The notes under the pieces: model-generated
Told to the model about the DNA's origin: nothing
The model's input: only the letters and a program-made list of their open reading frames with translations
Databases searched by the model: none
Shown: positions 3,301 to 62,810 of the stretch, one piece after another
How positions within the stretch are numbered: position 1 is the first letter of the stretch
Layout of the letters: every line of letters starts with the position of its first letter
Position numbers and translations under genes: made by a program
Assembly (NCBI GenBank): GCA_000708835.1
Contig: DF237254.1
Span: 41,898 to 105,897, forward strand
Length of the DNA: 64,000 nucleotides
Reading direction: 5' to 3'
Source of the DNA: Klebsormidium nitens
Lineage: Eukaryota; Plantae; Klebsormidiophyceae

Positions 3301-6300
3301 GGAAGCAAAAGTAAAGTTTCATTGCAAAAAGGCAGCGTCTATTCGACCCCGGCGGCCACTTGCTTCTCTGAGAAACGTTGCACCAATTAGTTTAGGTAGA
3401 GTTCCTTTCGAGACCTAAGCGAGTGTCCTTTCCGGTTACAGAACCGGATATTTGAAAGCAGAGGCTTTTGGGTTCTCAAGTGTTAAATTTCGAGACAACG
3501 GAACCTCTAACGGATCTGAAATAACAGGGTATCTAGACAAACGAGACCTCTAAGGAATCTAAAAAATAGGGTGTCTACATTGAAGCTTCCTTTGCGGGAG
3601 CGGAAAATACAAAGACGGACTGTCCACTGCTCTTGAGTTTGGAAGAGCTGTTATTGCAGCTGCAGCAGCGAGAAATATGCTGTCATGACCTCCGCGTGTC
3701 ACAGGGAAACTCTGGCGGCATCCTTTTATCCACCCATCAGAACTTCAAAATTCTTCCGTTTGATCAGTGGGTCTAGTATGAAATGTGTAAGCCCGCGGCT
3801 AGTAAAGCGGCAATCGTCACCTGGAACAGCGTCATGTGCCACGCCTCACTGGACACGTTCGCAAAGTTGGCCAGCACCGCGCGCCAGGCGGCCGCGGCTT
3901 CCCGCGCGCCGGCCGCCGCCGCGCCCTCGCCGTCGCCCTCCTCGCCCAAACCCTCCAAACCCTGCTCCCTGGTCGCGAGCACGCGCTCCAGATCGTCTTC
4001 CGTCAGCAACAGCTCCGGTTTTACCGCGTTCAAAAGCGCGCCGTGCTGCTTCAGAAACGTCAGCACTTTTTCGTACTGGCCCCGGACCGCCTCCGCCTGG
4101 TCCTTCTTGTTGGGGGGCAGTTTTCCCAGCTTGCCGGGCACCCCCTTCCCGCTCAGATTCTCCACCAGCTCGACCAGCAGCTTCCCCTTCGACGCCGAAA
4201 ACTCGCCGGCAATGTCTTTAATCGGCGCGCGCGAGAGCGTGACGTCAAGCCAGCGCGCGAGTGCGCCGCTCTGTGACGTCACGCTGGCGTCGGACAGCTC
4301 CGGGGGCTGGATCTTGTACCCGGCGTCGGGAACTAGAGTCGGGGCTTTTCCGTCTTCCACCGAGATTTGCAGCGCCTCCTTGTTGAAGGTGAGGAACGGG
4401 TGGTTCGTGAGAAGGCAGTTGTCCGCCGTTCCGGTCACCGGAACGGAAAATTTTCGGCCGTCGTCGTCGAAGAAGTCCAGATTCGCCGTGAAAGAGAGCG
4501 GCTGGTCTGACGCAAAGCTGACGTCGACGGGCAGGCGCTCCTTAGCGAACCCTATAAGCGTTCCTCCGGGGAACTCCAACTGGAGGGGCGCCTTATCGGA
4601 ATCGATCGGCAGCCGGTATTTGACGTCCAGGTTATCGTAACCCTTGTTGACCAGGTAGAAACGTGCGCGGGTGCGGATGTCAAGCGGAACAACCGGAAGG
4701 GTAATCTCCCTAACCTCAAAAGCTAACCCCGGCGCCAGCCCCGTGCCTTTTAGGGTCAGGAAGGAGTACGGCTCCTTTTCCGTTGTGCCGTCCAGGTGCA
4801 CCGGAACGGAACACTTGTACTGCTCCGCCTCCCGTGGCAGGAATGTGACCCGTATCGTTGTCGAAGTGCCCTCCGCCAAAACGCCCTGCTTCGGTTCGAC
4901 GGTGAACACGCCCTTGGAGGCGTCCACGTCAGCAGTCCCCAGCTGCCACGTCAGCGGCTTCTCGTCCGTGTTCGTGATCGTCGTCTCCATAGCGTATGGG
5001 ATCTGCTTCACCGTTTCTTTCTTGACGATCTTGGCGCCAAAGGCGAGGACGGGGGGCGCGAGGCGCGCCCGCGGCTTCAGCCCGCGTGCGCGCACCGCGC
5101 GCGCCGGCTGCTCGCCCGCCGGAACGCCGAGGACGGACAGTGGAAGGTCGAATGACTCCACGCGGTCGCGCGTCGGCTGAAACGACAGCACAAATGTCAG
5201 CGTCTTTTTGGCCGCGAGCAGAATCTTGTACTGCGGCCCTTCGTCGTCGATCTCGCCCTGGGCGGAACCGCCAGAATCCGCTTCGACGTCAATACTTCTC
5301 GGCCCCCCGGGGGAGATCAGCTGCAGCGGTCCGTCGGCAAATTCCTCCTCATTCGGCGCGGTCGCGGTCGCGGTTGCGCGCACGCGCGCGGGCAGCTCGA
5401 GCCGGAACTCCGGGTGTCCGCTGAGGTCCAGCAGCAAAGCCGCTGGAATTCCGCTGCTGTTGGTCAACGTCAGCGTCTGCTGTGCTGACGCGCCGATGTA
5501 AATAGCCCCGAAAGCGAACTCCTGCTGTTCGATGGTGACGGTCGGGACGACGGCGTGCGCGCACACCTGGAGACCGGTCGGTTTGCCGCCCCGGGCAGAG
5601 ACCTGCGCGAAAGCATTTTGGTCATTGATGTGGTCAACAAGTAGCACTTTTCAGTCTAGAGACACTCCGTGCAGTGAGAACGTCTGGAAGCCTTTTGGTT
5701 GTGCATATATCTGGTTCGAGAGGTTGTCCGGGCGACCTTAAATTGGAGCTCGTTTATAGAAGCACGGAACTCAAAACTAATCAAGAACTCGCAACTCGCA
5801 AACCTTGCCCTTTTGTGGTCCATTTCCACTCGAGGGTTGTAGTGAATCAGAATCCGTAACTTGAGACTGCGTGTCCCAAACGCAAACACAACCTCATTCA
5901 AGGTAAGTGGAGGGTGCGATTTCGAGGAATAGACAAAGGACGCCCATGAGCAACTCTTTGTTCTCCATCTGAGCGTTGCACAAGATCTTAAAAACATATC
6001 AATTCCGCAATCCTTCGCGCCCCAGCGTATGTGTGTACATGGTACGCTAATACCGAAGTAAGTGAAAAGCAACCACAAGGTCAAAGTTTACTTTGTTGAA
6101 AGCTTTTGATCCGTTGTTGGGGTCCGTTTCAACGAACCTTTTTCGCAAACCTAAGAGTCTCTTCAAGTCGCCCTTGAATAGACCCAGCTTCCAACGAGAG
6201 TAGCTGAGTATTTACCTGGAGCCACGCGTCGTACTCTTTCGCCTCCTCCGCTTCGAACGTCAGCTCCAAGTCTTGCGTTCCCCCCGGGCTGATCCGTCCG

Positions 6301-9300
6301 GCGACCGGGCTGCAGGAAAGCACCGCTGACTGGTCGCCCGCCGACGCCCGGAAGACGACGTCCGTCTTGCCGACGTTCCGCAGCGGAACGGTCTTGTGGA
6401 CAGGGGCGCCCACCGGAACCATGCCCAGGTCGAGCTTCTTATCCTTGAAGGCGCACTTGCCTTCCAGGCTCTCCCCTGCATTGAAACGGCTATTCCTTCA
6501 AATGGGCGTAGGCCATGCATGAACACCCCAATAAAATCGAGGGTAATGGGGCCCCAGAGTGGCCAAACTTCCAATCGGGTCCGTCCGAAAACGACTCGAA
6601 AGCTTTGAATGACAAATTTCGGACAGTTGAAATCGAACGCTCAAGGTTGTTGTCAGGTCACACTTTGCGTTCTTCCTGGGTTCCCTTTCTGCTCGATTCA
6701 CACACGTCTTTTCAATCACTCATCAAGATCCGGCCAATCTCTCGTCAAGCTGCGTTTCGCACTTGCTTCTGGAGACTTAATCAGGGCATGAATCTGCGAT
6801 ACCTGAATCGCAAAGACAGCCACCTACATACCGCAAATCAATACCGAACAGCTTTGCTTTTCACCAAAAGAGATACGCGGTATCAGAACCTTCTTTCCTT
6901 GACCTTCCTTTCTTGTCACATAACATACGGAAGCCTAGCTTTCTCTTGCTCACGAAAACCGCGGTACGTACCGCTACAGCGCACCCGCTTGCTCGCGCCC
7001 GCGCCCCCTACTACGCTCAGCGTCAGGAACCCGTCGTTGTTTCCGGTTCCGGGCCGCCACGTGACGGTGACCGGAACGGAACCCAACTTCTCGATCGCGC
7101 CCCGGGTTGGCGTGACCTCAAACGCCGGGTTAGAGCACTCCCACTGGTAGTCCGCAGTGTGGTTGTTCGGGTTATGGACGATTAACTGCTCGGTTATGCA
7201 GGGTTCCCAGTCGTCGGGTGTGTAGCGGAAGTCAATCTCCTCCCGGGAGATGGAGAGAGCGACCGGTTCTACTTCGGCGAGGACCTCCAACTGAAACCTG
7301 TGAAACCGGGGGAAGCAGTATCCGCTGAGTCAGGCCATCTTAAAAATCGAGTGGTTCCTCTCGTGATAGGCCAAGCTCTAATGGTGTCGTTAGGAAATCA
7401 CCAACTGAAGACCAGATCGTCAAGCTGAGCGAAAGCGGCTCGTGAGTTGTCAACATGTTTGTCTGTAGCCGGACCAAATCGGACGGCAAACGAGGAGATG
7501 CGGGAAGTTTTTAGGATTGTCTTCTGAAGGCTACGACGAGACGGGCACGGCGAACGGAACGGTTTAACGTCTGGCGCAAGGTCTTACGCGAGTACGCATA
7601 AGCTAGTAAAGCCCATTTCTCACGTGCAAAGAAGATTCTTTAAAAGTCGGACGAAGAACCCAGAGAGCGGGCCATTAAGAAGCAGGTGTCCTGACAAAGA
7701 CCCGTTTCGGTAACCAACATGAGAGCCCTGATTGTTTTCAGACACATCAAAGGGCTGGTCTTCGCGATTGGGGCTGGGTAGGAGAGTACACGTTTCAACC
7801 AATGGGATTGGAAACAAGCGGTTCGCCCCATCGTAAATTCGGACATCATGCGAGAACAAATCCTTCACGGAAGCATACGCTCCTTCATGAATGAACCGGA
7901 GTCCTCTTGGACTCATTCTAGAGGATTCTCTGAGACAGCCGACCGAAGGGATGTCTCCAAACCATTGTCCTTCATCTCAGCAGCTGCAAAGCCGGACCGT
8001 CCGATCCTTCCTGCTTACCTGTGCTGACCGTTAATGACGTACTCCACCTTCTGGCGCACCGTCTGCAGCTTGTTCGTACACAGCACGATCCTGAAGCCCG
8101 CCGTTGCCCCGGGGGGGATCACCTGGCTCTCCGGTTCGCTTTTCTCCAGCTCCGGTACGGACCGGGTCTCAACCCCGACCAGAATGCTCTTGTGCAGCTT
8201 GTTCGTGACTGTGAAAATCTTCGTGTGGGGCGCCAGAGCGCTGACCCGCCCAAAGTCGAGAGAATGAGGCCCTGCTACGATCTTCACGATGTCGCTCGGG
8301 CGTAATTGTGAGTGACACTCGTGCGCCTCCCCCGCTTCACAGGGCCTCGCCTTAAACTTTGCCACGGAGTGGATTTCGGACTCGGTGTTCGTTTGCAACG
8401 GACGGTTCTTCGGGCGGACGTACGAACCCTCCTTCCCGATCTCGTTTACGTCTTTGATCAGCCACAGCGGATCCTTCGCGAGCGGCAACTCCGGTTCGGG
8501 TTCCCTTAAGCCGGAGAACAGCGCTAACCCGAGGTTTAGCGCGTCGTCCGGGGGCGGAGGTTTAGCGGTCCCCCGGTTTTCTCGCTCCTCTCGTTCCATC
8601 CGGGCGCTCCGCAAGAAGGTCTTGTACTGATCGCGATGCTCGTCCCGCTTCGTTGACTCGTTCCTCGATAGCTTATGCAGCCCGCCGATGGCGTCGTCCT
8701 CCGCCTCCACTAACCCGCTCACTAATCCGCTGGTTAAGCCGCTGTTCGGGGAGACAGAAGTAAGCGCAAACCCGGTGCGTCTCTTCTCGGGCGACCGATT
8801 TGTTCCCCGCCCAACCGTTGCCGCCTTTACCGCAACCGTTGCAGGAGCTTTTCCGTCCACTCGCACCTCTAGTTTCTGCACGACCGGCCCCTTATCCGCC
8901 CCGCTTATGTCGCACGTCAGCACCGCCCGGCGAGGCCCGATGACTTTTGGATCAAAAGTGACGGCCACCAATTTAGACGCACGTGGGGGGATGATCCCGT
9001 GATCGGGTGCCACGTGGAACTCTGCTAAGCGTCCGAACTCGAACCGCACCGGGAGCTCAGTCTCTCCGTTCTCGAGCGTCAGCGTCTTCTTGACGCGGGT
9101 CTTCAAACCGGGCTCCCCGAACGAGAGGGCGGTCGGTGTGAATACAACCGAGGGCTCGACGCCCTGTCCCCAAATCGGGAGCTTCAGTCTGCGCTTCACC
9201 TCCTTCACATCGAAGATCGTCAGGAAAGAAAAGACTTGCTTTCCCGCACCCGCCGCAGGTTTCGTCGTCGAAAACCCCTTCATCGGCCCTTCTCTCGCAA

Positions 9301-11266
9301 CCGCCAACGTGATTACCACAGGTAATTCAGAAAACGGTGGCACCGTTCCGCTTGCCGGTGACACCGTCACACACTTCGACTTCGCCGCCTGGAGTCCCTC
9401 CAGCCTTTCAGCCGAGATGGTGTCAATCGGGCCGTGGTCCCCAGACCCCCGGCTGCTGTCCGGGTTCGTATACAGCCCCGTCTCATAGCTTATGGGCACG
9501 GGTCCGAGGTTTCGCAAACGCGCCCGCACCGTTTTGGAGCTCCCGAAGAACAGCGAACCGAAGTCGATTCTCCCCAGGGGCGTCCCGTCCTCCGCGCAAA
9601 AGTCCACTTTCTGGGGGGTGCTCGAGGCAGTGATTTCGACCCCCTGGGACTGAACTTGCCCCGGCTCCCCCCATTTAAACTCCACCCCCGCCTTAAAGTC
9701 CCCCGCATCTTTGGCCTCGTATGTGACTTTGACTTCTTCTCCAGAGTTCGGACCCAGAAACCCGCTTTGAGGTTCCACTATAACAGGGCAACTGTGATCG
9801 AAGCGTACCGACCATTCTGCCCCTTTTCCGCCTTTGTTCGAGATCGTCAGAGTCTTCTCGATTACGCTTCCTTGAGCAACCGCGCCGAGAAGTAGAACCG
9901 AGGGTTCGATGTGAAGGAAAGACTGGGGGAGAAGAGTGTGCAGCGGAATGCAGAGGGGGGGGCCTTGCTCTGTCTCGATGGTAAGTGCGCCGTGGACGTC
10001 CTTTTTGAGGGGGCCGTCTTGGCGGACCGTAACCTGCAACAGAGAAATCTGAATGTCACTTCACATGAAAAGATAAATATCCTGCAAACCACTATCAGCC
10101 GGAGCTGGTTATGAGTAGCAGCAACTTGTGCTACCGCCAATTTAGACTGATCCTTAAATCCCTGATGAAGAAGAAATCGGTTTGACCATGAAAGAGCGAT
10201 TTTACCAGGCACGGCGCTCCTGGTGACAGCCCGAAAGATCAGACTCTTCCTAAAGAAAGTATTGTTTCGACCCTTGTGAGGGCTAGAGGCCCAATAGAGC
10301 AGTCTCTTTCGGCAAGGTACGGCAGAGGGGCTCTGGAAACCCCGAGCGCTGCAAGCAAGTCGACCTGTCCAACTTCTGATGAGCATCCCATGAAAAAGGA
10401 AGGAAGGAAAAATGTGAATCCATGACACAGAGCATTGGCAGGATGGCACTGCCGAAGCTGGCTCTAATCTCCCTGTTCTGCTGCTCACGGTCTTTTCCTC
10501 TCCGCATTGACAATCGGATTACCAAATGTGGCGCGCAAGCTTTTCTCGAAGTGGAGAGAAGAGGAACATTCACAGAAACACTTGCGTGTAAAGTAGGACT
10601 TTGAAAAGGTTCCCATTCTGGCATTTTGACGAAGAGATCGTCGTCTTCTTTCTGTCATCATGTACTTTTGGCTTTTCTTACCACCAAAATCTGACCACCA
10701 AGTTCCCACACACAACTTTAGAGTGCAAGCTCAGAACTTGATACATCTTGACTTGTAGGATCCTAACCTTTCAGAATCTGGAAAGTGTATCCAGTATGTC
10801 CAAGCTATATTTTTCTCTCCAAATCAGAGACAAGATTACAATCAGCAATAAGCCTGCTGCCAAATTCAAGCAACAAGCCAAACAAGCGGTGTCAAAACGG
10901 CCAGACCCCCACCTTCACTTTCGTCTCTATCCCCGGGGCCAGCTTCACGACCCGGCTCGCTGACACCACCCCAAAGCACTCTGGCGTGGGGGGCAAAATC
11001 CGGACAGAGTGCGTGCGCACTGCATCCACATTCTTCAGTGTCAAGAACGCGTGCTGCTCCGCCCCTGTTTCCGATGCCTGGAAATTGACACTAGCTGGGA
11101 GGGCCCTGATGAAAGGATGCGCTCTTAGCAGGGGGGCCGCTGTGGCTGTGCTAGGGGCCCCCTCCCGGGACTGGCTGGCATTGGAATTGCCTGAGAAAGG
11201 AGTGTCGAGGCCTCGTTTTGGTACCGGCGGCGGCTCTGGCTGGGGGCCGGCCAGAGAAGCCGCCAT
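322..11266 (-). CDS. CFAP47: Cilia- and flagella-associated protein 47 (multiple ASH/Ig-like domains plus CH domain); 3' end continues beyond window start
   Basis: Spliced minus-strand exons with GT/AG and consistent phases: ~11266-10909, 10033-8020, 7297-~6972, ~6477-6214, ~5603-3818, ~3187-3030, 2586-~860, ~484-322. CH-domain motif 'SNFLSVPESVLLKWMTAHF..VTNFDADLRDGTVFYALL', repeated 'L.L.N.....' ASH-type beta segments and 'YTLTGTGEEPLSEGHVVLEC' match my recollection of CFAP47. Confidence 0.85.
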
Positions 11267-20260: not shown

Positions 20261-26950
<6,690 letters not shown>

Positions 26951-32131: not shown

Positions 32132-33614
32132 TTGTTTGCATCACATTCGTTGTCGTCTTCTCTTCTCCTCTCGAATTCAGAGCTATGCAAGGTTGAAACG
32201 AGTCTAGACTTTAGTTACAAGAATGGATTGCCTAATACTCGGTTATTTCGGGCCTAGGACATTCCTATATTCTCAAACAGCATGATTAGAACGAGTTGTA
32301 TCGTAACTGCACGGATTTGTGGAATGGTCGGAACCGTTGGTTCACCATAGGTGTCAATTCTGCCACCTAGTCTAAACCTCATGCAGAACATCTATGCATG
32401 TGTCGGTTTTATAGATATGCTTTTGCGACCCGCTTAATAGATTGTCGTAGATATCTTAATAATTCGCATGCAAATCACATGTATTACTCTGACATGCAGC
32501 GCCAGCATTGTATAGATATCGGTAATTACTCTCGTGTGAGGCCTAAGATACGAGTTACCCGGGCACCTCCAACCAAAAACCGAACCCAGATACCTAATCA
32601 CCCGCTCCGCACCCCACCCCAGCCTAATCACCATGCCATCCCCACCCGTCCCCCGGGTGCACATCTTAGATCACGCGGCACTTAGGTGCCACGAGAGTAA
32701 TATATCGGAGTATTGTCTATAGTACCTCATGCACTAACACTTACCTACACACAAAACTTAGTAAACTTTCATGGCGAAACTTGATGTGTGAAAGGAGCTG
32801 GGCGTATACAACATATGCGCATTGGCATTATGAGTCTATCACAATGCACGCGGAGATACGTTAGTGACGGCAGCCTCTCTTCAAATATACGCGTAGTCGT
32901 ACGTGACCATGCCACTGAGAAACTTAAAAGTATGCAATCACTTGGACGGACGTGTCTTGTGTGCGCAGACATATGCGGGGACACAGTGGTGCACGTGACA
33001 TGGTGACGCAGTCGGGATACCTATCATTTGCAAGTCAAAATCTCGACTTGATTGACTCTTGCGGTTTAACGTACATCATCAAGCACAATTTATCATCATG
33101 TCATAAAGCGGATTGCAATCACGGCTCTTACGTGAGGTATTAGACTCAACGGTATTAGACTCGGTTCCCTCGACGTACGTACTGAAACAATCCATCCGAG
33201 GTACTTTTGAAATCATAACGCTTGAGATCAAACACCTTGTCAAAGAATGATACGTATATTCTTCTGCAGTTTGCGTGCGAGAGTTGGTAGTACTTACAAC
33301 TTCGTCCTACAGTGCTATCTAATTCATACCCTGCTTGATCAACTTCAATCAGAAATATTCAGGCAGTCGTATTGTGAACATGCTCAGCTTAAACCCTCAG
33401 CCTATTCCAACTGACTCCTCAACGCGGCCTCCACCCCGGTTGTTTGCCCCGGGCAGATTTGGCAGATTTTTAAAATTCTCCCCTCTGGTTCCCCTGGGCG
33501 CTTGTTTGTCCCCCGGCCGACGCTCCCTTTCTTCCCGGAGCGATCCCCCTCCTCCCCCAGGGGGAGAAAATCGTCGTTTTCATGCTATTTCTTCCTCTAA
33601 TTTTTACGATTTTA

Positions 33615-36600
33615 TCAAAGCTTGGTGTACCCCGACCGCCGCCCGGGGTTCTGCGTCACGCAGAACGCGAACACGAGGCACGCCCCGGCCACGACGCACG
33701 TCCCGAACACGATCAACAAGTCGATCATCTTCGCCTTGGGGCCCGGTTCGTAGCACGTGCTGTTCCCCCAGGGCCCGAAAATATTGGGTTTGTTAACCAA
33801 CTTGGGTTCCGGCCGGGTCGCTGCCCAGAAAAGCACCCAGGATTTGGTGGTTGTCGGGTCCATTTGGTAGGGTTGCAGGTTAACCAGCGTGCTCCAGGCG
33901 GCGGTCACGTTGATGATGGCCAGGTTCGAGTAGAGCGCGCTCGTCCACGTGTTGTTGACCTGCGCGCGCGCGGGTTTGGGGGTTTTTTACGGGACGAACG
34001 GCAGCGGTCTCGGCTTAGGAGTCGATAAGCAATCAGGAAGGCTGATCGCTCTTCTCATTATCTGGAGCAGATCATTCCTGGCATGGAGGACGTTCGGCGG
34101 TGCGCAGAGAAATGCGGTTGAGACTGCGAAGGCAGCAGGTCGGGCTCTTTGCCGTGCACACCTTTCTTGTATGAGCGCGACCGAGATGCGAGACGCAGAA
34201 TTCGACCGTATGTATCAGAGAGCCGTTCAGTGGACCTTTTGGGCTCAATTTGAGACATCGAGAAGCTCAGCAAACCCCAGATTTTGATTGTCCGGTTCCG
34301 AAACTCAGATTTGGACTTGATCGGAACGCCTAGTCACAGGTTTTGCAGTCCTGTGAGCAGATCCAAGCGAGTATGAGCCGCATCCTTTGGGTCGTGATTG
34401 GATGTGTCCGCCACCAAATCACCTTTTGAGTGTTGTTTCCTAGTACCTCCTTGCAATTGGTGCGCAAAAGTAGTCACAGGCCGAGCTTCGTCAAACGTTC
34501 GCCGTTTTGCGAACGAACTGGCAGGGCGCCCTTGGACTCTGTTTCACAGATGGGTCTTCGACTTATACTCGGCAACATGAAATGTCTCAGAAAAACCAGC
34601 GGGGGAGGGAATTTACAAAGGGCGCGTAAATCCAAAGTTCTTCAACAGAAACTAGAGGGGAGAAAAACTCACGAAGGGCGCGTAGTCCTGGAGGCGCATC
34701 GTCCACTCCTCGAGCACGAAGTCCGGGAACCGTACGATCTCCATGGGAAGGATCATCGGACGCATGTGCTGTCCGTGGATTGCCTCCGTCGAGTTGTCCG
34801 CATACGTGGCGTACGTCACCTGAAAAGCAGGCGTGATGACGTCAGCGAAAGCGAGATGCCAACCGATTTACGTCAGGGCAGGTTGGAAGCAGACCGTCCA
34901 GACGGTTAGCGCCAGAGCGGGGAGAGTTGACGTGGGGATTACGTCATTGGCTTTCCTCCACTTGCAAGTGATGTGACATCCAATCCGGCTCCGCGTTGAA
35001 AAAAGATCAACTTCGTGTGACGCGGCCAAACGGTCACTTGATGATTTGACATGGAAACAAGGGAAAAGGCTTAAAAATCTGGTGAAGAAACTTCTTCGAA
35101 ACAGTGAGAATCTGGTGAAGATTCTCGAGCCACGCGAGGCACGCTCCAAAAGAATCAGTGCCCATCAAGGGTGGTCTTCGGCAGAGTCTTCCTGACTGTG
35201 ACAGGTCTCAAAAGTCACCGGAAAAAGTTCCAACCTGCCGCAAAGCGGGCTGTCGACGCCGTTACCATCGGGACAGGTCGTCAACGAGGGAAAGAAATAG
35301 GCCAATACTTACATTCGGTCCATCCTGCACTCTCACCAACCCAGAACCAAAAGCCCACAAACTCGTTAAATTATGAAAACACAGCCCCGGCATTCGCCGG
35401 CATCTATCACTGGGCAACAGAACATAGACAAGTATCGGTTCTTTGCTGGGAACCCAATTTGCCCCTTCAAGGTACACCCAAATAAACAGAGAATCCAGCT
35501 TCCACCGGCCCCTATCACCGGGCAAAAACCGAACAGTTCGGCTCTGACCTGTCCCTCGGTGGCAATCCCCGCCACCTTGTTATCGCGGTACTTGTAGGGG
35601 CACGCGTTCTGGGCCTTGTTGATAAGGAAGTAGCGCCGCGCGGTGCGCCGCGAGACCGCGAAGAGCGCCATGCCCAGGTTCTGGATGTTCTGCTTGCTGG
35701 AGGCGAGCCCGTACAGCCGCACCGCGTGCGCGAAGTTGATCTCCTCCGCAACCTGTGCAGGGTTCAAGAGGTTTAAGGCTTGAACATCTGAGATTAAGGG
35801 CTTGGCACTGAGGATTCTTATTCTGAGTGCTGAAACAGTACGTACAGCCGCACCGCGTGCGCGAAGTTGATCTCCTCGGCGACCTGCGCAGGGTTTAGCG
35901 GAGTTTAGGCGTGGTCAAATATAAGTTCAAGGGGTTCAATCATTGGGTTTATCGGTTGAGCAGACAATCGTTTTGCTGGCCACTGATCTGAACAGTTCCA
36001 TAACATACGCGAAATTGATCTCTTCTGCCACCTGTGCAACAAGCTCGCTTGGTAGAGCTGACTAAATATCCATCAGATAGCTGTGGCTGCTTTTCTGTAC
36101 TCCAAGCAAGAGCAACTTTCTCCGCTCAGCCATTCCGTACTCCTCATGCTCATACTTTCTTCCCCGCTGACGTCACATTACGACTCACCGAAAGCACGTC
36201 CCGCCCGTTTGCTGACGTGTCCACGAGGCCCTTCCCCCAGTTGTGCCCGTGGAACCAGTCAAAGCTGCGGAACGTCGGGTAATACGTGTCGAGCGCCGAT
36301 GGGTTGGCCACATCGCGTATGAGCTCCTCAATGAAAGCGCCGTTGGTCGTTCCCCACGTGCTGGAGTAATAGCGCAGAACCGCGGCCGCGTAAATGAACG
36401 GGCCGTAGTTGTAGTGGTGGTAGTTGTAGTACGTGTTGCCGTTGTCGGTCAGGTTACCCTGCAAAAGAAGGGTCAAGGAGGTGCGTTAGAAAGACGAAGC
36501 CCGCGTATACACGGGCACGTAGTTGTTGCCGTTGCCGGTCAGGTTGCCCTCAGAGATTGGGTTAAGACGAAATTGGGGTAAGGAGTTTGCCCTGGCAACC

Positions 36601-39600
36601 TCAAATGGCGGGTCGGAAAGGTGGCGTAACGATGCAGTAGTTTTAACACGTGGCCGAAACGGGAGGTCAAAAACGATTATTTTCTTTTGGCAACCAAGTG
36701 AATGCTGACGTTCTGCTGGATGTCGTCTACTTGGCAAATATAAGGACTTCAAAAGTTTGAGACTGTTAAGCTAAGGCCCAAGCTTCTCCGGATCAACGAA
36801 ATTGGCCCTTCCTCCTCTTCCTTTTCTGGCTGCACATGCTACGGTGAGTCTTGGCCGCACCTGACCCAGCTCTTTCCATCCTTCACGATTCAGTTTCTTT
36901 CACCAAACATTTTCCCATAGCACAATCTACAAGGCATGCTAATGTTCGGCGACCGCGCGGCTCACGGTGTTGCCCTTGATGTCGCTGGACGAGACGAGGC
37001 CCCCCCAGGTGGCGTCGTAGTTGAGAGGCGTCAGCTGCTTGTTCTTCACGAAGTTGGCCATCGCTGACGTCAGCTTCGTGATGCAGTCCTTGTTGCTGAC
37101 GCCCACCACGTCCGCGGCCTGCGTGCAGAACGTCAGCGGAGGTTTAGACCGGGTTTGAGTTCGCGGGGTTTCAAGGGTGGTCCAGCTGGAGGTTGCTAGC
37201 GTGCTGTGAGAACCAGAAGGGATGAGACTAGCCATAATTACGAGGCTGTTTGTATATGTCAAGGAAACATTTTTCGTGGGCAATATGAAACACAGCAACC
37301 AAGAAAGGTGAGAACAGGTGCGCGACGAGTCTCCTCCTCTGATTGTTTTTGAGTACATTCATAAAGATCCTGGTATCCGGCAAAAGTCGGAGCAGGAGCT
37401 GCTCCTGCTCTGTCAGGAGAAGGGCAAAAAGCAGTAGAAACCGAGTGTGGGGGATGAGAGACGGCTATAGTGTACCTGGCAGAGCATCGCGTATTTCTGG
37501 AGCTGCCGCCCGAGCTCGTAGTTGGACGACTGATTGCCGGTCGTCGCCGAGAAGTCGAGCGCCAAATCGTCGATCAGAGCGGCCACCACGCCGTCGTACT
37601 GCGTGGGTTAAAGTTAACCCGTTCAAACCAGATTCTCATTTTCAAAGAAGTCAGCGGAAAAGGAAAGTTCGTGAGACAATCTTTGGAAAAAAATCTTTTA
37701 AAAAATCTTCCGGGGAACTTCGATCGCCTATTTCCAGTCTGCCCATTCTGGAAAATTCCACAGAGGCATTGAAGCATGAGAGCAGAGGATTGATGTTTGA
37801 GCATGTCATAGACACACTAGACGCACACTTTCGCCGAAAGATTCCTGGGTTAAGAGTTAAACCTACCTTGTCGGTTTGCATGGCGTTGGGCGGAGTCCAC
37901 GTAATGGTCCCCGTGTCCCCCTCGCGCAAGATCCACCGATCGCCCTCGAACGCTTGCATCATGCCCTGCCACAACAAAACGAGTTTTAGAAAAGGGTCTG
38001 AAACTTGTCACGGGTTGGAATGCTTTGAGGTTGGCCGTACCGCGCAGTACGTCTAATTTAGTGTATCAGTCATTCCGGAACGTGCCACAGTCGGGATGCA
38101 GTCGACTCGGCCAGATTGCGCAATTCCACCTAGAAAGCTTCTAACTCGAAATATGACAAAGTTCGCACTGATTCCTGCCAAGAGTTTTGATTGGTCGTAG
38201 CTTCAACGCTAGCAAAAAGTGGAGCGCGTCAGGACGGTCAAACAAGTTGAAGCCAGAGATCCTGGCTCTGAACGGGTCCCACGAAATTCGACTAAGCGGC
38301 TTAGCCTCACCTTGGTCGCGCCCCTCATGGCGAGATTAGTGAAGCGGAATCGTAGCTTCAACATTAACGAAAAGCGAAACGAGTCTAAACGGTCTAACAA
38401 GTTCAAGCCAGAGAGCCTGGTTCGGAACGGGTCCCATAAAATCCGGTTAAGCAGCTTAACCTCACCTTGGTCGGGCTCATCATGGCGAGGTTAGTGAGGC
38501 GGAAACTCGAGGTCGTGGCGTTAACGATGGTGTCCTGGTGGTGCGGGAAGCCAAAGTGCAGCATGGGAATGGTCACATTGGCGACCGTACCGTTGGCGAA
38601 CTTGAATGTCTGACTGTTGGTCGCGCCCGCGCCCTCGGCCTGGAAGCAACAATTTTGGGGTTTGAAATTCAGGATTCAGCGGTTAAGGATGTTGGGTCAG
38701 GGTTTTGGTGTTGGCCGCGTCCGCGCCCTCCGCCTGGAAGCAACAGTTTCAGGTTAAGGGTTCTGGGTTTGGGATCTAGGGTCGACGTTTCCGGGTTTGG
38801 TTTCGCGGTTTCCAGGGTCAGGGCTCAGGAGTCGGGGTTCAGTTATTGGAACGTAAGAGTTGGGTTTTCATTTCGGAAGTTCGATGATGAGCCCTCTGGT
38901 GAGAACCGTGCGAGGGGGCTGTAAATGCAAGAGAATATGCGGAAGGCCATTAAAATGCCCTGTAGAGAGGCGCTGCTAGCAGTAAGGTGACAGGGTTGAC
39001 TCTTGGGTCAGCACCCGGAGTACGCGCATCGAGCTCCAGGAAAACCCTTAGAGCGCAAGATTAAGCTACATAGGAAGGAAACCTTGTGGACTTATGAAGG
39101 AATCAAACAGTATGGAGTCTGGAGTAAGTAGATCGCCGTGTCCTTGCAGACCGCACTTTTCTTCGCTTTCACCTACCGCTCTACCTATCAAGCGTGTCGA
39201 TTCCATCGGTCAGCATAGAATTGCAATCGCACATCTTTTGCACTCAAAACGCAAACCTCTGATTATTGGAAAGACCGAAACTAGATTGTCGGCTCACCGC
39301 CACGTTCCACTTGAAGTAAATGTACGCGCCCGCGAGGCCCGTGCCGAGGACGGTCACGTTGAGCTGCCCGCCAATGGGGTAGCGCCACCTGTGCGAGTCG
39401 TACAGTGACGTCACGTAGCTCGTGTTGGACTTGCGGTAGATCTCGTTGAAGCAGAACTGCGTGTTCTTGTTGTTGGGGATCTTCGCCAGGCGGAGCGTGC
39501 CGGTGACGGGGCCTGAAAGGAGGGGTTAGCTTATGGGTTAGCTGAGGGTTACAGGGGATTAAGACGCGGGTTTACAACGCTCCCAGCGGTGGTTTGAACG

Positions 39601-42600
39601 GTGGGTTTGCTGAAAAGTGTTCTTGTTGTTCGGGATCTTGGCCAGGCGGAGCGTGCCGGTGATCGGGCCTGAAAGGAGGGGTTAGTTCGCAGGTTAGCTG
39701 GGGTTACAGGGGATGTAGATGTGGGTTAGCAACGCTCTCACAGGTGGTCTGAACGGTGGGTTTGCTGAGAAGTGCGTATTGAGATCCTGCTTAGGCGCGG
39801 CGTGCCGTCAACGGCCTCCCATTGGATGGGTTTTCAACGATGCCTATGAGGAGACCAGAAGTGAGATTGCATCAATCTTTGATTGCTCAAGCTTCGGAAA
39901 TAGCTGATATCATTGAGATTAGTGTGGACGAACGTTTCAGTATTTAGAGTGGCAGCCTGCCTAACGCGACCAATAGCCCGATGAGCAGCCGTCCCATAAT
40001 TGAGATGAACAATTTCCAAACAGAACGAGCGGCGAAACTGAGCGGAACGCACTGAAAGACAACTGAAGCTCATCAGTAAAGAATCAATATAACAGTCGTA
40101 GCGGCGTGACAAACTCCTGCTCTACAAACTGCTAGTCCCCACTCACTCTCCGCTGTCAGGTTTTGTCAGAGTTTCATGGCTCACCCGATGCTCTGAGCTC
40201 CTTGCCGCTATTGGACAGGGTCAGGGACGCGCTGAGGGAGTACAGCAGCCACGTGTCGCCGTTTGAGAGGGTGATCGTGAACCTGCGTCAAAAACGCACC
40301 GCTCAGTATAACGCACCAGTGGCGGGGTCACAAAATTCAAAAAAAAAGTGCTTCCGGCTCAGCTCATTCTAGCTTTCGGCTGTGGCGTAATGAGCTCGTA
40401 CTGAAGTCACAAGCACCAGCACTCCGAAACGACGGTCTTATCAGCGTCAGACCGCTTTAAGGAAGATTCGTAAGCGCTTCCTTCAATCCCCCTTCTATCG
40501 CGGTTCGGCCGTTCCCTCCGTAATATATAATCCCTCAGAAAGAGTCAACGAGACACTTCGCAAACGGCTGGCGCGTACGAAAATCCGCTCCAGAGTTGCA
40601 CAGAAGAAACGCACAACCTTTCGGCATGCCCAAAGCGGCACAGAACAAAAAGCTGTGCGGAACACCCAAAAGCGAAGTTTCTCAGGACCCGCCTTTTGAA
40701 ATGAATCGTAGATGAGCCTCTCACTTTTTGCCCTCATCGCCCACAGCCGTCGATGCCGCCACGCCCGTGATGCTGTGCGCCGTGTAGATGACAGGTGTCA
40801 GCCCCGCGTAGTTGGCCGTGACGTAAGCCATGCCCTTGACGAGGGGGAACGTCAGCGAGGAGGTGCCCCCCGAGGCCTTGTAGACGAGTGTGGCCGAAAA
40901 CTCGTCGAAGGCCGTCACGGTGTAACCCAGCCCGGTCTCGGCCGAAGAGAAACCCATGTCGGCCTGCTTCGCGGTCGTGTAGCTCTGCAGGGGGGAATGG
41001 TGACGTCAGCGGGTTGTGACGTGTACGAAGTCTGAGAAGGGAGAGAAAGTGTGTGGAAGGAGCTGAAGTCCCTTCCAATCTAAGATGGAAGCCAACGGCC
41101 TTCGAAGGATCGGCACTGAATGAGCCCTGCTCCGCTTGCTCTGCGTTTGAAATCGTGAACGCTGAGAGGAGGAGTCTTCATCTGTTGCCTTTTGATCTGC
41201 CAGAGCTGAGCTCGAACCCTGCGTCAGCAGCTGTCCCAATGTGCTCATATATTGCCACGTAGAACTCTGTTGTGATTCTTTGCACAAGCTTCGATGGCGT
41301 CCTTTTGTATTAGCCTGTTCGTCAGCTCTGCGGAGTGTTTCCTTGCTGGAGTGCTTTGCTGACGTAGCAAAGAAGGAAGCTTTTCTGTCCACATTGTGAT
41401 CTGCAATCCTTCAAAGAAGCTATGAGTGCGATGTAGACCTTGCGCTTTTCTTATCTACGGTGAGTACGACAACACTTCTTTCACCGAATAGAACTGTTCG
41501 GTAAGTCGCATCCGCTGGCGACCATCACTTCTCCGTCTTCTTTGAACCTCCCAAGACTTCTGCCTCTCACAATTTTGATTCAATGTTCAAAGACGAGGCT
41601 GTTCCTATGTTCCTGCACCGATCATCTCACGAGCAGATTCTCGTTCGCAAACCAAGGCTTTAGCAGGACGCCAGACTTGTTCGTTTGTCCAGCTGCCATT
41701 TGTTTTCTTTCAGATGACAGCTGTAGATTTGTACTGCTCGACAGCTGTACAAATCCGAAGCGCTACCCCTTCAAATTTGCTTGATGTGATATGCTTGCAG
41801 CTCGACAACCTGCTCACTGAGTTTCTTTTGGACCTCTGTTTCAGCTTTTTCTCCTCGTTGATTCCATTTTAGTTGCCTGACGACTCATGTTCTGCTCACA
41901 AGAGAATCAGAAGCAACGTCGGCTTGGATAGCAACTGGCGTAATCCATGATAGCAGGAGGTTCTTTCATTGGAGGACTTTGTCCCAGGATCCAGCAAGGT
42001 TTGCATCCGAGCAGATGGCTAAATTTGTTTTTGTGGAATTCGAGCTTTCCAAAAGGGGAACCAAAAGGCCACCTTAGATTGCTCACCATAGCCCTGTCGC
42101 TGGCTGCCTTTGCAGTGAACATGTTGACCGTGGGCTCATCCGCATGACTGATGCTCAGCCCAAAAGGCGCCACAGTGTTGGGCTGCAAATGGAAGAGTCT
42201 CATGTAAGTTGGTTTATCTAGTGGTAAACAAAATCCTCTCAAGTTCTTAGTTGTCTTCCATAGCATCAACCCATGTTTGACATCAACTCTGCTCTGTGGC
42301 TCCTCAACTCGTGTCTTCTAGCGCTGCGTGCCCTTTGCGCTGCAGACCTGTTGTGATCCACTTGAGACCTGAAGTGATGGTCATCTACCCTCACAAATTG
42401 CAATGCTGATGCACTTAGCTTTTGGGTACGAATCTTCTGGAATTAGCAGCATTTTGGACCGCCCCGCCAGAATGGTCAATTGCTGTATCTTCAATAAACA
42501 GATCTCCAACCTTGCATCAGCAGAGCTTTATCTTTCTCAGCACCTTCTTTCCACCATGCACGAGTATACAAGAGAACACGCCTTCAGGCCCCACCAGATC

Positions 42601-43037
42601 TCATCTTCATAAACTGCCCACTTCAAGGATTTGCCTGTCAATGAGCAGAAGCTTATGAGACTTACCCAGACCACATATGGATTCACATACACGTTCCCCG
42701 TTCCCGACCCAAACACCAGGCTCGTCCAGAATTCATTTGTGGGGATGGGCTTCTTCAACAGCGCGGCATCCAGGTTCTTTGGCGTGACGGGATGCGTCAC
42801 CGATGTGAAAAGCGTATTGGGCTTGGACGTTGAGATTGGGTCCGTGGGGTTTGTGCTCAGAGACGTTGTGCTTGCGGTTGTGGGGGCAGTCGTGGTTGTC
42901 CCCCCCGAAGTACTGGGGGTGGTTGACCCCCCCCCAATGATGAACGGGTTCGTGGTCGCCGCATTGGACACCCTGGTCAGAGTCGGGCTCAGCACGCAGA
43001 GGGCGACCAAAACGAAGGCTCTGTTAGTGGGCGCCAT
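33615..43037 (-). CDS. Glycoside hydrolase family 81 (endo-beta-1,3-glucanase-like) protein, 851 aa, with signal peptide, Thr/Ser linker and C-terminal TM helix
   Basis: 13 exons (43037-42666, 42182-42087, 40984-40725, 40282-40185, 39512-39298, 38639-38466, 37965-37867, 37598-37476, 37118-36966, 36458-36189, 35752-35549, 34819-34673, 33959-33615) total 2556 nt with no internal stop. GH81 motifs PIPTNEFW, PLVKGMAYVT, GDTWLLYS, FPHH, YDATWGG, HHYNYGPFIYAAAVL, LIRDVANP, FRSFDWFHGHNW, EAIHG, KSWVLFWAATR. Confidence 0.9.
38650..38870 (-). repeat. Degenerate GGGTTT/AAACCC tract in a GH81 intron
   Basis: Repeated gggttt/ggttaagg/gggtc units on the + strand, i.e. AAACCC-rich on the gene strand upstream of the acceptor at 38640. 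Confidence 0.75.
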
Positions 43038-43917
43038 TAGTGCTCTGGTACCCCCCCTCTCTTCAGATTGCCCACTAAGCGGTGCGCTTTGCATGCACCC
43101 CTTTCCCCGCGTGTATCCTCATTCCGCAATGCTGTCTGATTTTCCTCGTCTCTGTCAAAGGATCCGGTCAGCCACCTTCCAGCGACACCTTTCAGGAGCA
43201 ATGCTGTTGATCTTCCTAAGTCGAGGCTTCTTTCCTGCGATATTTTCAAAACCTAGCGAACATTTGCCTGTCTTCCTGTCCAATGCCGTTCTTTCCCCTC
43301 TACCAAAGACTGTGTTTTGACCGACTAGCCCGTGCATGGCAGGCCGGTTGCACTGTCTTCCAACTTTAGAGACGTTGGAAACAGTGGACAGGCTGGCGAA
43401 GTGCATCTGGTGTCTGGCGCAAGACTCATGTCGTTGCAATGCTGAGATTCAGAAGCTGCTGAGCAGCGCCTCCGGCTGATGGATTCTCAGAATCATTCCG
43501 TCATCGATGCACAGGACCGCGGAAAATGCATACGGTATGTCAGAGCAGACTGTCGCATGCATTGACATTCGGCCGGTTTGCAGTTTAAACGAGTTCCTAG
43601 TGAGTGCAGATACCGTACATGCGGGTGGCCTCTTGTTATGCGCGCGTGGAAAATTGGAATCTACGAATTGGCCGTCCACGATCTTCAGCTACTACGAATC
43701 GACGGCGTAGGTTCACGCGGCACTGTCAGCGCGCCCGTGCACGAGCCGGCCGCGAGCTTACTGCGCAGGCTCACGAGTTAGCTGTCTCTTAAGTTTGCGG
43801 CTGGCTCTTGAACTTGAAGTTGTGAAGCAGGCATTGCCATTCAATGCCGTTGCCATCTGCGATGCTTGGCGCCAGGCTTGACAAAGCGGGCAAAGCCGCC
43901 TTTCATCGGTGGTCAAC

Positions 43918-45237
43918 ATGGCTGACGCAGCTTCCCCGAGGGTTTCAGGCATGGGTGCACTTCCTCCAGAGCTCAAGGCGCAGATAGTCTGCTTGGCTGT
44001 GACAAAGACGGGACAGCACGGTGCTTGCACTCTCGCATCATGCAAATTGGTTTCCAAGGAGTGGTGTAGCTATGCACGCCAGGCGAGCAAAGAGCTTTCC
44101 ATTAGCTCGATGGATAGCAGGCGAACGCATGTGTCGCACCTGCGAGCTGCTTTGCAGAGCAATCCTCAAGTTGACTCGCTATGCCTGTACACAGTTTATG
44201 ACACACCTTTTGCAGACTGGGGAGAAGTGATCTCTGCCCTTGCTCCCAGGAAGTGGGCCTCGATGTCTCTCGCCTGCGAAAGCTACTGCGAGCCCATTTC
44301 CCTCGCTGCATTGCTGTCCGCCTCCTGCAGCACTTTACAAACTCTTGAGCTAATAGATGCAGAGCTGGAGATCAGTGGACTTGACCAGGTGTTCCGGCAA
44401 AGCGTGAACCTGCAAAACATATATCTCAGTGGACATGGCGGATTATCCCCGCAGAAATTTGCCGCAGTTCTGGCTGATGCGGGCAGATGTCAGCAAGTAA
44501 AGAAACTTGTCTTTGATAATCTCCCGTACACTGGCGAGGAACGAGTCGTCTCTTTGCCTGACAGCCTCAACCTGATACCTACAACAATCCCAAGTCTAAG
44601 GGCGTTGTCCTTCACAGCCTCCGCCAGCATTTCAACGGAAGCGTATGTAGCTCTAGCCAGTGGCTTACCCTGCTTGGAGTTGCTGCGCATCATCGGAACT
44701 CAGCTCTCCCACTTGAATGATGCAGTTCTCTTCAGCATCTCAAGATGTTGTCCGCTACTCAAAGAGCTAGTGCTTGGGTCGCCCCTTGTCAGTCTGCGAT
44801 ACACAAATAGAGAAGCGCCTATTCAGATAACTGCAGTTGGGTTAGTGGCCATCCTTCAACAGTGCCCCTCCCTCACCTCTCTAAAACTTTCATGCCTTCC
44901 ACAAGTCAAAGAGGACGCCTGGCCAACTCTTCTCCATGAGATGTGCAACATTAAAACCCTCGAATGCCCCTGGATTTGCAAGGTCACTCCCGCATTCAGT
45001 GCCCTCAAGGAGCTGGAGCGTTTGGCACTTTATGACTGGGGGATCCAGATCATGGAACAAGTGGATTTGGAACAATTGGCACGCGTAGTCGGAGAACTGC
45101 CTAACATTCTGACGCTCCAGATATGCTCTGCAAAGTTGAAGACGGCAGAGATTGACGTTATGAAACCTCACATGCCTGGTGTTACCTTGGAAACGTATCT
45201 TAGGGAGGAGGAAAAATGGAGGTTACAGAAGCATTGA
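43918..45237 (+). CDS. Intronless F-box-like/LRR (RNI-like) protein, ~439 aa
   Basis: Single long ORF. N-terminal 'LPPELKAQI...LASCKLVSKEW' is F-box-like, followed by LxxLxL repeats (LQTLELID, LRALSF, LELLRI, LKELVLG, LTSLKLS, LKELERL). Confidence 0.75.
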   Translation: MADAASPRVSGMGALPPELKAQIVCLAVTKTGQHGACTLASCKLVSKEWCSYARQASKELSISSMDSRRTHVSHLRAALQSNPQVDSLCLYTVYDTPFADWGEVISALAPRKWASMSLACESYCEPISLAALLSASCSTLQTLELIDAELEISGLDQVFRQSVNLQNIYLSGHGGLSPQKFAAVLADAGRCQQVKKLVFDNLPYTGEERVVSLPDSLNLIPTTIPSLRALSFTASASISTEAYVALASGLPCLELLRIIGTQLSHLNDAVLFSISRCCPLLKELVLGSPLVSLRYTNREAPIQITAVGLVAILQQCPSLTSLKLSCLPQVKEDAWPTLLHEMCNIKTLECPWICKVTPAFSALKELERLALYDWGIQIMEQVDLEQLARVVGELPNILTLQICSAKLKTAEIDVMKPHMPGVTLETYLREEEKWRLQKH

Positions 45238-46196
45238 CTACATCCAGTCCGCGGACACTTGATAAACCTAGCTGATCAATTGGATAGATTGCGATTACGA
45301 GAGCTTGATTTTGCAAGCTGACATAGACCAGAGCAGACAAATCATCAAGGGCGTCTGCTGGTGAGCAGACAACATAATCATAACATGATATGCACATGTC
45401 ACCTCCATCAATTGGACTCGACGTTGACTAATTGGCACGATCGTGAACCGCACATGCATTGATTGAATGCGACGGTGCATGCCATGGCAGGTGTATAATG
45501 ATGCAGAGATATGCAACCGACTTCATTTCCGCATGTTAGGATCGTTGAAATTTCCAGGTTGAGCGCTGCTCGCTCATTATAGCTGACATGATATTACACT
45601 CTGCAGGTAGTAGCTCCCCCAAAACCAAAACTCCAGAACATACAGTAAGCATGTGTACGCGTGCACATCCTTTCTAGCTTTAGTTGGACAGGCTCAAGAA
45701 CGATCAGCTTCATGATCTACCCGCCAGCCTGCTTCATGGTAGGTGTAACGAGGCAAATTTGAGCATGCACATTTCCTCTACTATCTGGTGGATTATGCCA
45801 TGACAATCTGCACGAATGTTTAGGAGCTCTAAGCATCATGCTTAGAGCAGCGATACCTTCTGAATATGGGAGAATCCTGACAAAGAGATCGTCGAGATTT
45901 GGATTGAATGGAGCTCGATCATATGTTCGACCCTATCCAGACATGGGCTCCGTCTTCACTCAAATTATCTAGAAGCAACTCAGATGTACTCGTGTTGACC
46001 AAGTTCCTCCACGACAAACTCAGATACCTCTCCCTTGGGGTTGCCAAAAATCTGCGGGAAGAGATAGAGAATGAGCTCTCAATTGTCGAACTTCTTTATA
46101 AAGGTTTGTCGCTTGAAGCTCTGAGCAGCAATACCCTTGAATCCACACAAGATTGAAAAAGTAGGTTGGGGTGCAACTTAACTGCCCCTCACCGCT

Positions 46197-49100: not shown

Positions 49101-50233
49101 ATCGCCAAACGTTGCACATTAAAAGCGGCTCAGTTGTATCGAATTCTGACTGCCTTCTTCGAAACACGTCATGCACAGCTCGGAAGACATTGAGCAATCT
49201 ACTAGAATCAAAGAAACGGATTCTACACCCGTTCAATGCTCTCTCTCTCTCACTTCCCAACACCATACATGGTGCTTGTTTCGCAGCGACTCACCAACCG
49301 TAGAGATGACCGCGTCCAGCTCCTTGTTTCGCATGGCCCGATCGATTGTCTCCGGCTTGAGCAGGTCCCCGACCGCGAGCATGGCTCCGAGGCCCTCAAT
49401 CTCGGNNNNNNNNNNNNNNNNNNNNNNNNNNNNNNNNNNNNNNNNNNNNNNNNNNNNNNNNNNNNNNNNNNNNNNNNNNNNNNNNNNNNNNNNNNNNNNN
49501 NNNNNNNNNNNNNNNNNNNNNNNNNNNNNNNNNNNNNNNNNNNNNNNNNNNNNNNNNNNNNNNNNNNNNNNNNNNNNNNNNNNNNNNNNNNNNNNNNNNN
49601 NNNNNNNNNNNNNNNNNNNNNNNNNNNNNNNNNNNNNNNNNNNNNNNNNNNNNNNNNNNNNNNNNNNNNNNNNNNNNNNNNNNNNNNNNNNNNNNNNNNN
49701 NNNNNNNNNNNNNNNNNNNNNNNNNNNNNNNNNNNNNNNNNNNNNNNNNNNNNNNNNNNNNNNNNNNNNNNNNNNNNNNNNNNNNNNNNNNNNNNNNNNN
49801 NNNNNNNNNNNNNNNNNNNNNNNNNNNNNNNNNNNNNNNNNNNNNNNNNNNNNNNNNNNNNNNNNNNNNNNNNNNNNNNNNNNNNNNNNNNNNNNNNNNN
49901 NNNNNNNNNNNNNNNNNNNNNNNNNNNNNNNNNNNNNNNNNNNNNNNNNNNNNNNNNNNNNNNNNNNNNNNNNNNNNNNNNNNNNNNNNNNNNNNNNNNN
50001 NNNNNNNNNNNNNNNNNNNNNNNNNNNNNNNNNNNNNNNNNNNNNNNNNNNNNNNNNNNNNNNNNNNNNNNNNNNGCGAGCATGGCTCCGAGGCCCTCAA
50101 TCTCGGACCGGAACTTCTCGTGCCGCTGGAGGGCCGTCACCCAGGCGCCCGCAGCTGACAGCTGGCGCACCAAGTCCATCCCCACGCCGCCGCCGCCCGC
50201 GACAAAAACTGCAAAAGGAACAGGGTCAGCCAT
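46197..50233 (-). CDS. NAD(P)-binding Rossmann-fold protein (atypical SDR, NAD_binding_10-like)
   Basis: Exon 1 ([10 protein letters not shown]...) spans the N gap. Later exons: [11 protein letters not shown] (~48933), [20 protein letters not shown] (~48550), VTSIGTGDS (~48094), [21 protein letters not shown] (~47517), [11 protein letters not shown] (~46995), [19 protein letters not shown] (~46471), then a probable last exon 46223-46197. Confidence 0.85.
48181..48220 (+). repeat. About 5 degenerate CCCTAAA (TTTAGGG) units, interstitial telomere-like
   Basis: gaaacctgaatccctgaaaccctaaagccctaaaccccc. Confidence 0.7.
49406..50075. other. Assembly gap (670 N) flanked by an identical 31-nt sequence
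   Basis: gcgagcatggctccgaggccctcaatctcgg occurs at 49375-49405 and again at 50076-50106. Confidence 0.95.

Positions 50234-57857: not shown

Positions 57858-62810
<4,953 letters not shown>

Follow-up and report, generated by a model that had tools for sequence, protein, structure and literature searches.

The window analyzed here, a stretch of 64,000 nucleotides of Klebsormidium nitens DNA (assembly GCA_000708835.1, contig DF237254.1, positions 41,898 to 105,897 of the forward strand), contains, on its minus strand, an intron-rich gene for a protein of glycoside hydrolase family 81 (GH81) that extends past the family domains into a predicted membrane anchor. What is known of this family are beta-1,3-glucanases that are either soluble or bound to the wall and, among plants, glucan-binding proteins (GBPs). 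The gene (43037..33615, in window coordinates, which are used throughout) consists of 13 exons that join into an uninterrupted frame of 851 codons and a stop codon; in the order of transcription, the exons occupy positions 43037-42666, 42182-42087, 40984-40725, 40282-40185, 39512-39298, 38639-38466, 37965-37867, 37598-37476, 37118-36966, 36458-36189, 35752-35549, 34819-34673 and 33959-33615. This model is based on homolog-guided tblastn searches, frame-consistent GT..AG pairs and two junctions taken from RNA-type contigs. In the stop-to-stop translation, the GH81-like pieces are colinear across 33000-46000, and successive exon pieces match, in order, positions 1-294 of the GH81 N domain (PF03639) and then positions 8-349 of the GH81 C domain (PF17652) in Pfam, with a top score of 112.6 bits. 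Both domains are colinear and complete, which makes the protein a member of GH81 by fold and sequence family. The 851-residue model aligns with a full-length homolog (P0151) from end to end and free of large gaps (32% identity, E-value 7e-122), and the GH81 chains in the PDB are matched over the catalytic barrel (E-value 5e-17).

The last exon, which runs from V738 to the stop codon behind the acceptor ...GCGCAG|GTC, encodes the last stretch of the GH81 C domain together with all that follows it. Positions 301-349 of the 349 in PF17652 fall within this exon, so that the GH81 domain ends there, at R786 (V738-R786, 33959-33813, with the terminal string ...KSWVLFWAATR), and about 65 codons lie beyond. 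These codons specify a juxtamembrane Pro-rich stalk of 31 amino acids (P787-D817, 33812-33720) that contains the sequon N803-S-T and Cys806, a predicted transmembrane helix of 21 residues (L818-V838, 33719-33657) with three cysteines (C825, C831 and C837), and a predicted cytosolic tail of 13 residues, TQNPGRRSGYTKL (T839-L851, 33656-33618), in which R844, R845 and K850 are the basic residues. The tail finishes with YTKL (Y848-L851, 33629-33618), the end of a GYTKL sequence, and is followed by a TGA stop (33617-33615). The probable 3' untranslated region (33294..33614), covered in part by RNA-type contigs, includes TGTAA (33298-33294), a candidate polyadenylation signal, this pentamer being the poly(A) signal in green algae. 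The C-terminal strings quoted in an earlier note on this DNA, made from the letters alone, were all recovered on the minus strand; five residues, AKMID, that lie between the quoted stalk and the quoted helix had been left out, which is immaterial.

Averaged over 19 residues, the Kyte-Doolittle hydropathy of the C-terminal helix is 2.63, compared with 1.49 for the core of the signal-peptide-like segment and at most 1.25 elsewhere; the helix is the sole segment above 1.6, and this gap leaves exactly one membrane-helix candidate. The N-terminal segment (residues 1-26, 42960..43037), recognized by sequence and hydropathy, comprises a short basic n-region, MAPTNR, a hydrophobic core of 12 residues, and ...VSNA|A before the predicted cut, where the small residues S and A at -3 and -1 fit the cleavage rules. 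The combination of a signal-peptide-like N-terminus, a lone C-terminal helix and a short, positively charged tail makes the type I single-pass topology proposed in the earlier note well supported, as far as topology can be deduced from such rules. The Thr/Ser/Gly linker described there is present as well (residues 27-72, 42822..42959; 52% Ser and Thr) and is likely to be O-glycosylated. The same note reported at least 11 luminal N-x-S/T sequons; the 13-exon model has exactly 11, all of them luminal, with no enrichment, given that shuffled ectodomains average 10.5 and 49% of the shuffles reach 11, so that the count as such carries no information.

The segment downstream of the GH81 domain is represented in RNA-type contigs. 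Among the contigs from three runs of the same organism that match the gene, spliced ones carry the joints 36966|36458 and 36189|35752, each flanked by GT..AG when read on the minus strand, which shows that the runs contain mRNA. A contig of 247 nucleotides (33804-33558), free of joints, covers the stalk, the helix, the tail, the stop codon and 57 nucleotides beyond it, and a second contig (33328-33511) probably belongs to the 3' untranslated region. A run from another organism (X7) yielded only matches of 18-32 nucleotides, which are uninformative. Taken by itself, this RNA evidence is modest; stronger evidence comes from comparison. Searched by words, the last exon recovered a single cluster (P0170, 94% identity), located on Logan contigs L001/L002 from two runs. 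In the related species represented by these contigs, the last exon has the same acceptor, frame and stop codon, with about 90% identity in DNA and 94% in protein, but the intron and the 3' flank are unalignable (about 45% identity in a forced alignment). Positions 169-324 and 779-1120 of the relative's contigs correspond to exons 12 and 13, with 94% protein identity and retained splice sites; the intron between them is about 450 nucleotides long in the relative compared with 713 nucleotides in the window.

By Nei-Gojobori counts, with one-sided binomial tests against neutrality, the whole last exon shows 25.5 synonymous versus 7.5 non-synonymous differences, that is, a ratio of non-synonymous to synonymous rates (dN/dS) of 0.075 (p = 7e-10). 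The protein sequence of the stalk is identical in the relative despite five synonymous differences (no non-synonymous ones, p = 0.00045), and for the helix and tail together dN/dS is 0.15 (p = 0.0075). The relative's helix differs only by T824S and V827A, with the three cysteines retained, and its tail only by N841T. Purifying selection on a segment with diverged flanks implies that the stalk, the helix and the tail are translated and constrained.

The GH81 domain itself lacks two of the three catalytic residues. The active endo-beta-1,3-glucanases of this family are marked by an Asp/Glu/Glu triad (D475, E553 and E557 in RmLam81A) and the motif E-S-x-S-E, and this signature is absent from the window protein, which has Y543, L619 and E623 instead. 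Tyr543 (codon at 36420..36422) is found where 97% of the homologs have Asp, the position of Asp475 in RmLam81A; Leu619 (36192..36194) replaces the first catalytic Glu (Glu553 of RmLam81A, Glu500 of barley GBP1); and Glu623 (35744..35746) is the second catalytic Glu, retained (Glu557 of RmLam81A). Leu619 is encoded by the penultimate codon of exon 10, where a spliced contig fixes the reading ...RDVLS|VAEEINF. The triad is intact in 128 of the 150 best representatives from an exhaustive search, none of which has the Tyr or the Leu, and in 107 of the 111 homologs of a second sample, or 235 of 261 sampled homologs overall, the rest being mostly fragments. Apart from the close relative, in which both substitutions are present (contig L003), the replacements at positions 543 and 619 occur in 0 of 257 homologs. 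An exhaustive search of representatives with exon 10 found no full-length ortholog above 57% identity, only a 96-residue fragment of a relative (P0019). Most of the positions that are conserved in at least 85% of the homologs, and are in that sense invariant, are nevertheless kept (58 of 69); the 11 changed ones, which include D543Y, H547N, Y550P, S603N, E619L and S622A, cluster around the catalytic center. With two of the three catalytic residues lost, a non-catalytic, membrane-tethered role in glucan binding becomes plausible.

The earlier note had taken a membrane anchor to be exceptional among GH81 proteins, and in this respect it has to be corrected. A signal peptide combined with a C-terminal helix was detected in about 8-17% of the complete non-fungal homologs sampled, all with Asp/Glu/Glu, which also goes part of the way toward the objection, raised in that note against its own proposal, that anchored and active GH81 proteins might be common elsewhere, the activity being judged from the intact residues. 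In the first sample, a post-domain helix with a basic tail was found in P0012, P0119, P0111, P0110, P0127, P0115 and the fragment P0020, and in the second sample, 7 of 86 are anchored: P0169, P0151, P0186, P0202, P0216, P0289 and, with a C-terminus resembling that of glycosylphosphatidylinositol (GPI)-anchored proteins, P0243. The sources include Rhizamoeba saxonica (EP01130_P019303, P0169), Euglena gracilis (EG_transcript_3416, P0289), the Symbiodiniaceae Cladocopium/Effrenium (P0111, P0110), an EukProt transcriptome (P0012/P0151) and environmental sequences from JGI (P0119, P0186, P0202, P0216). Several of these proteins also possess signal-peptide-like N-termini, which suggests that they are of type I too, and, judging by their sequences, they are apparently active.

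When 86 domain sequences, among the unnamed representatives of which the plant GBPs were not identified, were placed in a quick maximum-likelihood tree, the window protein belonged to a non-fungal clade of 29 sequences (support of 100 in the Shimodaira-Hasegawa-like approximate likelihood ratio test, SH-aLRT) that includes all five anchored sequences in the tree, scattered inside the clade, whereas there are none among the 57 sequences of the fungal-type clade. Nearest to the window protein are P0009, P0012 and, at 39% identity, the protein from Rhizamoeba; of the relatives that carry a name, Rhizamoeba and other protists come closest. When the 65 residues of stalk, helix and tail were compared with the 294 collected proteins using phmmer, P0170 alone was matched; the other anchors have no detectable similarity, a result compatible with a single origin as well as with several. 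Our literature search on anchored or inactive GH81 proteins found no paper that describes the anchored architecture, only a remark on 'a few' transmembrane domains predicted in stramenopile GH81 proteins, and transmembrane helices in Phytophthora GH17, not GH81. The anchor as such does not appear exceptional; judging by the sequences compared, it is the combination with a disabled active site that is unusual. A separate observation from the same searches concerns bdelloid rotifers (Rotaria, Adineta and Didymodactylos; P0191-P0201), whose GH81 proteins are 44-47% identical to the Rhizamoeba enzyme and include no C-terminal helices. Given that GH81 is otherwise rare in animals, the rotifer genes may have been acquired horizontally.

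Taken together, these features make it probable that the gene product is a membrane-tethered, non-catalytic, GH81-fold glucan-binding glycoprotein of type I. Under this reading, a cleavable signal peptide would take the chain into the endoplasmic reticulum, such that the complete GH81 fold (a beta-sandwich and an alpha/alpha barrel) comes to lie on the luminal or extracellular side; the conserved Pro-rich stalk would link this fold to the single C-terminal helix, with the basic tail of 13 residues in the cytosol. The ectodomain, lacking the catalytic Asp and the first Glu, would most likely bind beta-1,3-glucan without cutting it, in the manner of a membrane-tethered lectin, and the Gly-Tyr-x-x-Leu sequence, if functional, could be read by the mu subunits of clathrin adaptors, so that the protein would cycle from the plasma membrane to endosomes or the vacuole. 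The binding of glucan and of adaptors, the localization and the biological role are what we infer from these features. Judged by the same sequence rules, a minority of the GH81 proteins of protists are type I membrane proteins, and in one algal lineage selection has continued to preserve an anchored member whose active site is disabled. The gene in the window is a concrete candidate for a membrane-tethered glucan-binding pseudoenzyme.

Several observations weigh against this interpretation. The junction between exons 12 and 13 is bridged by no contig in the RNA runs examined, and the same runs contain intronic pieces (34139-34397 and 35801-36080), so that pre-mRNA or DNA is included. The conservation of the tail rests on a single relative (dS about 0.4). 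The start of the protein is ambiguous, given that an in-frame upstream ATG at 43094, at a distance of 57 nucleotides, would add 19 residues and lengthen the n-region. With 11 invariant positions near the cleft changed, the domain might recognize a different ligand or none. Finally, the YxxL motif singled out in the earlier note is indeed there, as Y848-T-K-L851, which fits YxxPhi in the predicted cytosolic segment, but chance would place such a motif in about 11% of tails with 13 residues and this composition, and it is weak evidence alone.

The position of this motif leads to the strongest of the alternatives. The Gly-Tyr-x-x-Leu sequence is located at the extreme C-terminus, 9 residues from the membrane; a YxxPhi motif that coincides with the end of the chain would arise by chance with a probability of about 1.2%, or about 0.09% if Gly at -1 is required as well, both figures being post hoc. 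In the nearest anchored relatives, the tail also contains YxxPhi (YTKI in the Rhizamoeba protein, P0169, and YQPI in P0012), again a post hoc observation; the conservation of the motif in the related species says little because dN there is about 0.03. Lysosome-targeting tails of this geometry are those of LAMP1 (GYQTI), LAMP2 (GYEQF) and CD63 (GYEVM), and a rule for lysosomal GYxxPhi tails is reportedly laid down by Bonifacino and Traub (2003). The suggestive, although post hoc, analogy is that the geometry of the motif resembles lysosome- or vacuole-targeting tails at least as much as the endocytosis signals of surface receptors. The protein could, then, be a resident glycoprotein of the endolysosomal or vacuolar membrane, with the tail as a direct targeting signal and the dead GH81 domain lining the compartment or binding glucan inside it, a possibility that we consider realistic although clearly less probable than the one set out above. 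A heavily glycosylatable ectodomain would fit such a resident, but the sequons are not enriched, and the GYxxPhi rule stems from animals.

Somewhat less probable still is a tether between the wall and the membrane, or a sensor of wall integrity, in which the dead GH81 domain would grip the alga's own, callose-like beta-1,3-glucan, the anchor would transmit the state of the wall to the membrane, and the tyrosine motif would serve turnover. Yeast Wsc1 and Mid2 and the plant wall-associated kinases would be the analogs of such a protein, an anchor with a glucan-fold ectodomain that does not cut is what it would need, and the stalk, with its free Cys and its sequon, is very strongly constrained, which suggests more than a spacer; the 13-residue tail, however, contains no signaling domain. 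More speculative than either is a receptor or sensor for beta-1,3-glucan that the green lineage would have made from a disabled GH81 enzyme, with glucan capture coupled through the stalk, the helix and GYTKL to adaptor-mediated internalization or to a kinase as partner. In the form that the earlier note gave it, a receptor that would need a co-receptor and might be endocytosed on binding its ligand, the hypothesis gains some plausibility from the disabled active site and from the strong constraint on the stalk, and, on equally speculative grounds, the captured glucan might be microbial, prey-derived or from the alga's own wall. If true, this would be the first transmembrane glucan receptor based on GH81 and would set a precedent in evolution for the complex of glucan perception that has long been sought around the plant GBPs; an anchor alone, it should be stressed, does not indicate a receptor.

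The remaining explanations fare much worse. It is improbable that the protein is an endo-beta-1,3-glucanase on the membrane that has stayed active with the help of other residues: anchored GH81 proteins with intact catalytic residues exist, and Glu623 is retained here, but the changes from Asp to Tyr and from Glu to Leu affect positions that are 95-97% conserved and are accompanied by H547N, Y550P, S603N and S622A. Even a lone replacement of the first Glu by Ala, E500A in barley GBP1, abolishes the hydrolysis of laminarin (10.1101/2023.04.12.536646). There is also little to recommend a gene-model artefact or a minor isoform, with a soluble main product made through another 3' end. The unbridged exon 12-13 junction and the two intronic contigs would allow it; retention of intron 12, however, leads to a stop after 6 codons and leaves the GH81 domain short by about 50 residues, so that no sensible soluble isoform arises by that route, and the last exon, with conserved splice sites, holds the indispensable end of the domain in frame with a stalk, a helix and a tail that are under selection. 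Least probable of all is a cleaved GPI-attachment signal, which would leave the mature protein lipid-anchored with no cytosolic tail: the small residues G810 and A813 upstream of the hydrophobic stretch might suit it, but GPI signals finish in their hydrophobic stretch, as in the fungal homolog P0093, without the hydrophilic extension that is seen here (13 residues, among them Arg-Arg and Lys, conserved up to the same stop codon in the relative), and the earlier note, which had named this alternative as a threat to its topology, is probably right on this point.

The gene also displays a structural peculiarity that is distinct from its coding capacity. At least six exon ends have 'echoes', that is, copies of the segments next to the splice sites that are 72-90% identical to the originals and lie 56-156 nucleotides away, inside the adjacent intron. 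The pairs are 35841-35913 and 35710-35782, 39617-39774 and 39461-39619, 38709-38749 and 38615-38655, 36519-36550 and 36429-36460, 34593-34628 and 34649-34684, and 38195-38349 and 38350-38504, all in the minus-strand gene. Another, more diverged copy of the start of exon 11 is found at about 36061-35939. The echoes of exon 11 are skipped by the spliced contig that joins 36189 to 35752, and are contained, without a splice, in the RNA-type contig 35801-36080. No echo accompanies the last exon.

On the plus strand, a head-to-head neighbor of the GH81 gene is a single-exon open frame of 442 codons (43909-45237) with the look of a leucine-rich-repeat/F-box-like protein; about 870 nucleotides separate the two start codons and may constitute a shared promoter region. 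Elsewhere in the window, the minus strand carries exons of great length for a protein with MSP/ASH-like repeats that is probably flagellum-associated (700-10039) and the exons of an enolase (22233-26387), and the plus strand an exon of a prokaryote-type aminotransferase (57858-58355), a set that suits a flagellate of the green lineage with plastids. A run of N at about 49400-50100 marks an assembly gap.

Comparison with better-known systems delimits what is shared and what is not. The anchored GH81 proteins of protists, which fall in the same clade, agree with the window protein in having a signal-peptide-like N-terminus, the GH81 domain, one C-terminal helix and a basic tail, but they keep Asp/Glu/Glu, and the overall identity is 32-39%. 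The GH81 enzymes with solved structures (RmLam81A, 4K35; CtLam81A, 5XBZ; BhGH81, 5T49/5UPI) are soluble secreted proteins with Asp/Glu/Glu, compared with Tyr/Leu/Glu and a C-terminal membrane module of 65 residues in the window protein. The soybean GBP and barley GBP1 and GBP2 share the GH81 fold, bind beta-1,3-glucan and have long been discussed as parts of a glucan-perception complex, although they have no signaling domain of their own; in contrast to what is predicted for the window protein, they are active glucanases that lack both a signal peptide and a membrane helix and reach the apoplast by an unconventional route. To our knowledge, the link between the plant GBPs and membrane signaling has never been found. 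Beyond GH81, the likenesses are analogies only. Dectin-1 is a membrane receptor for beta-1,3-glucan that also has a YxxL motif, but it is a type II protein with a C-type lectin domain that signals through Syk, and there is no homology; we know of no Syk in green algae. LAMP1, LAMP2 and CD63, likewise not homologous, have in common with the window protein a short tail in which Gly-Tyr-x-x-hydrophobic stands at the C-terminal end or close to it, and the LAMPs do not bind glucan.

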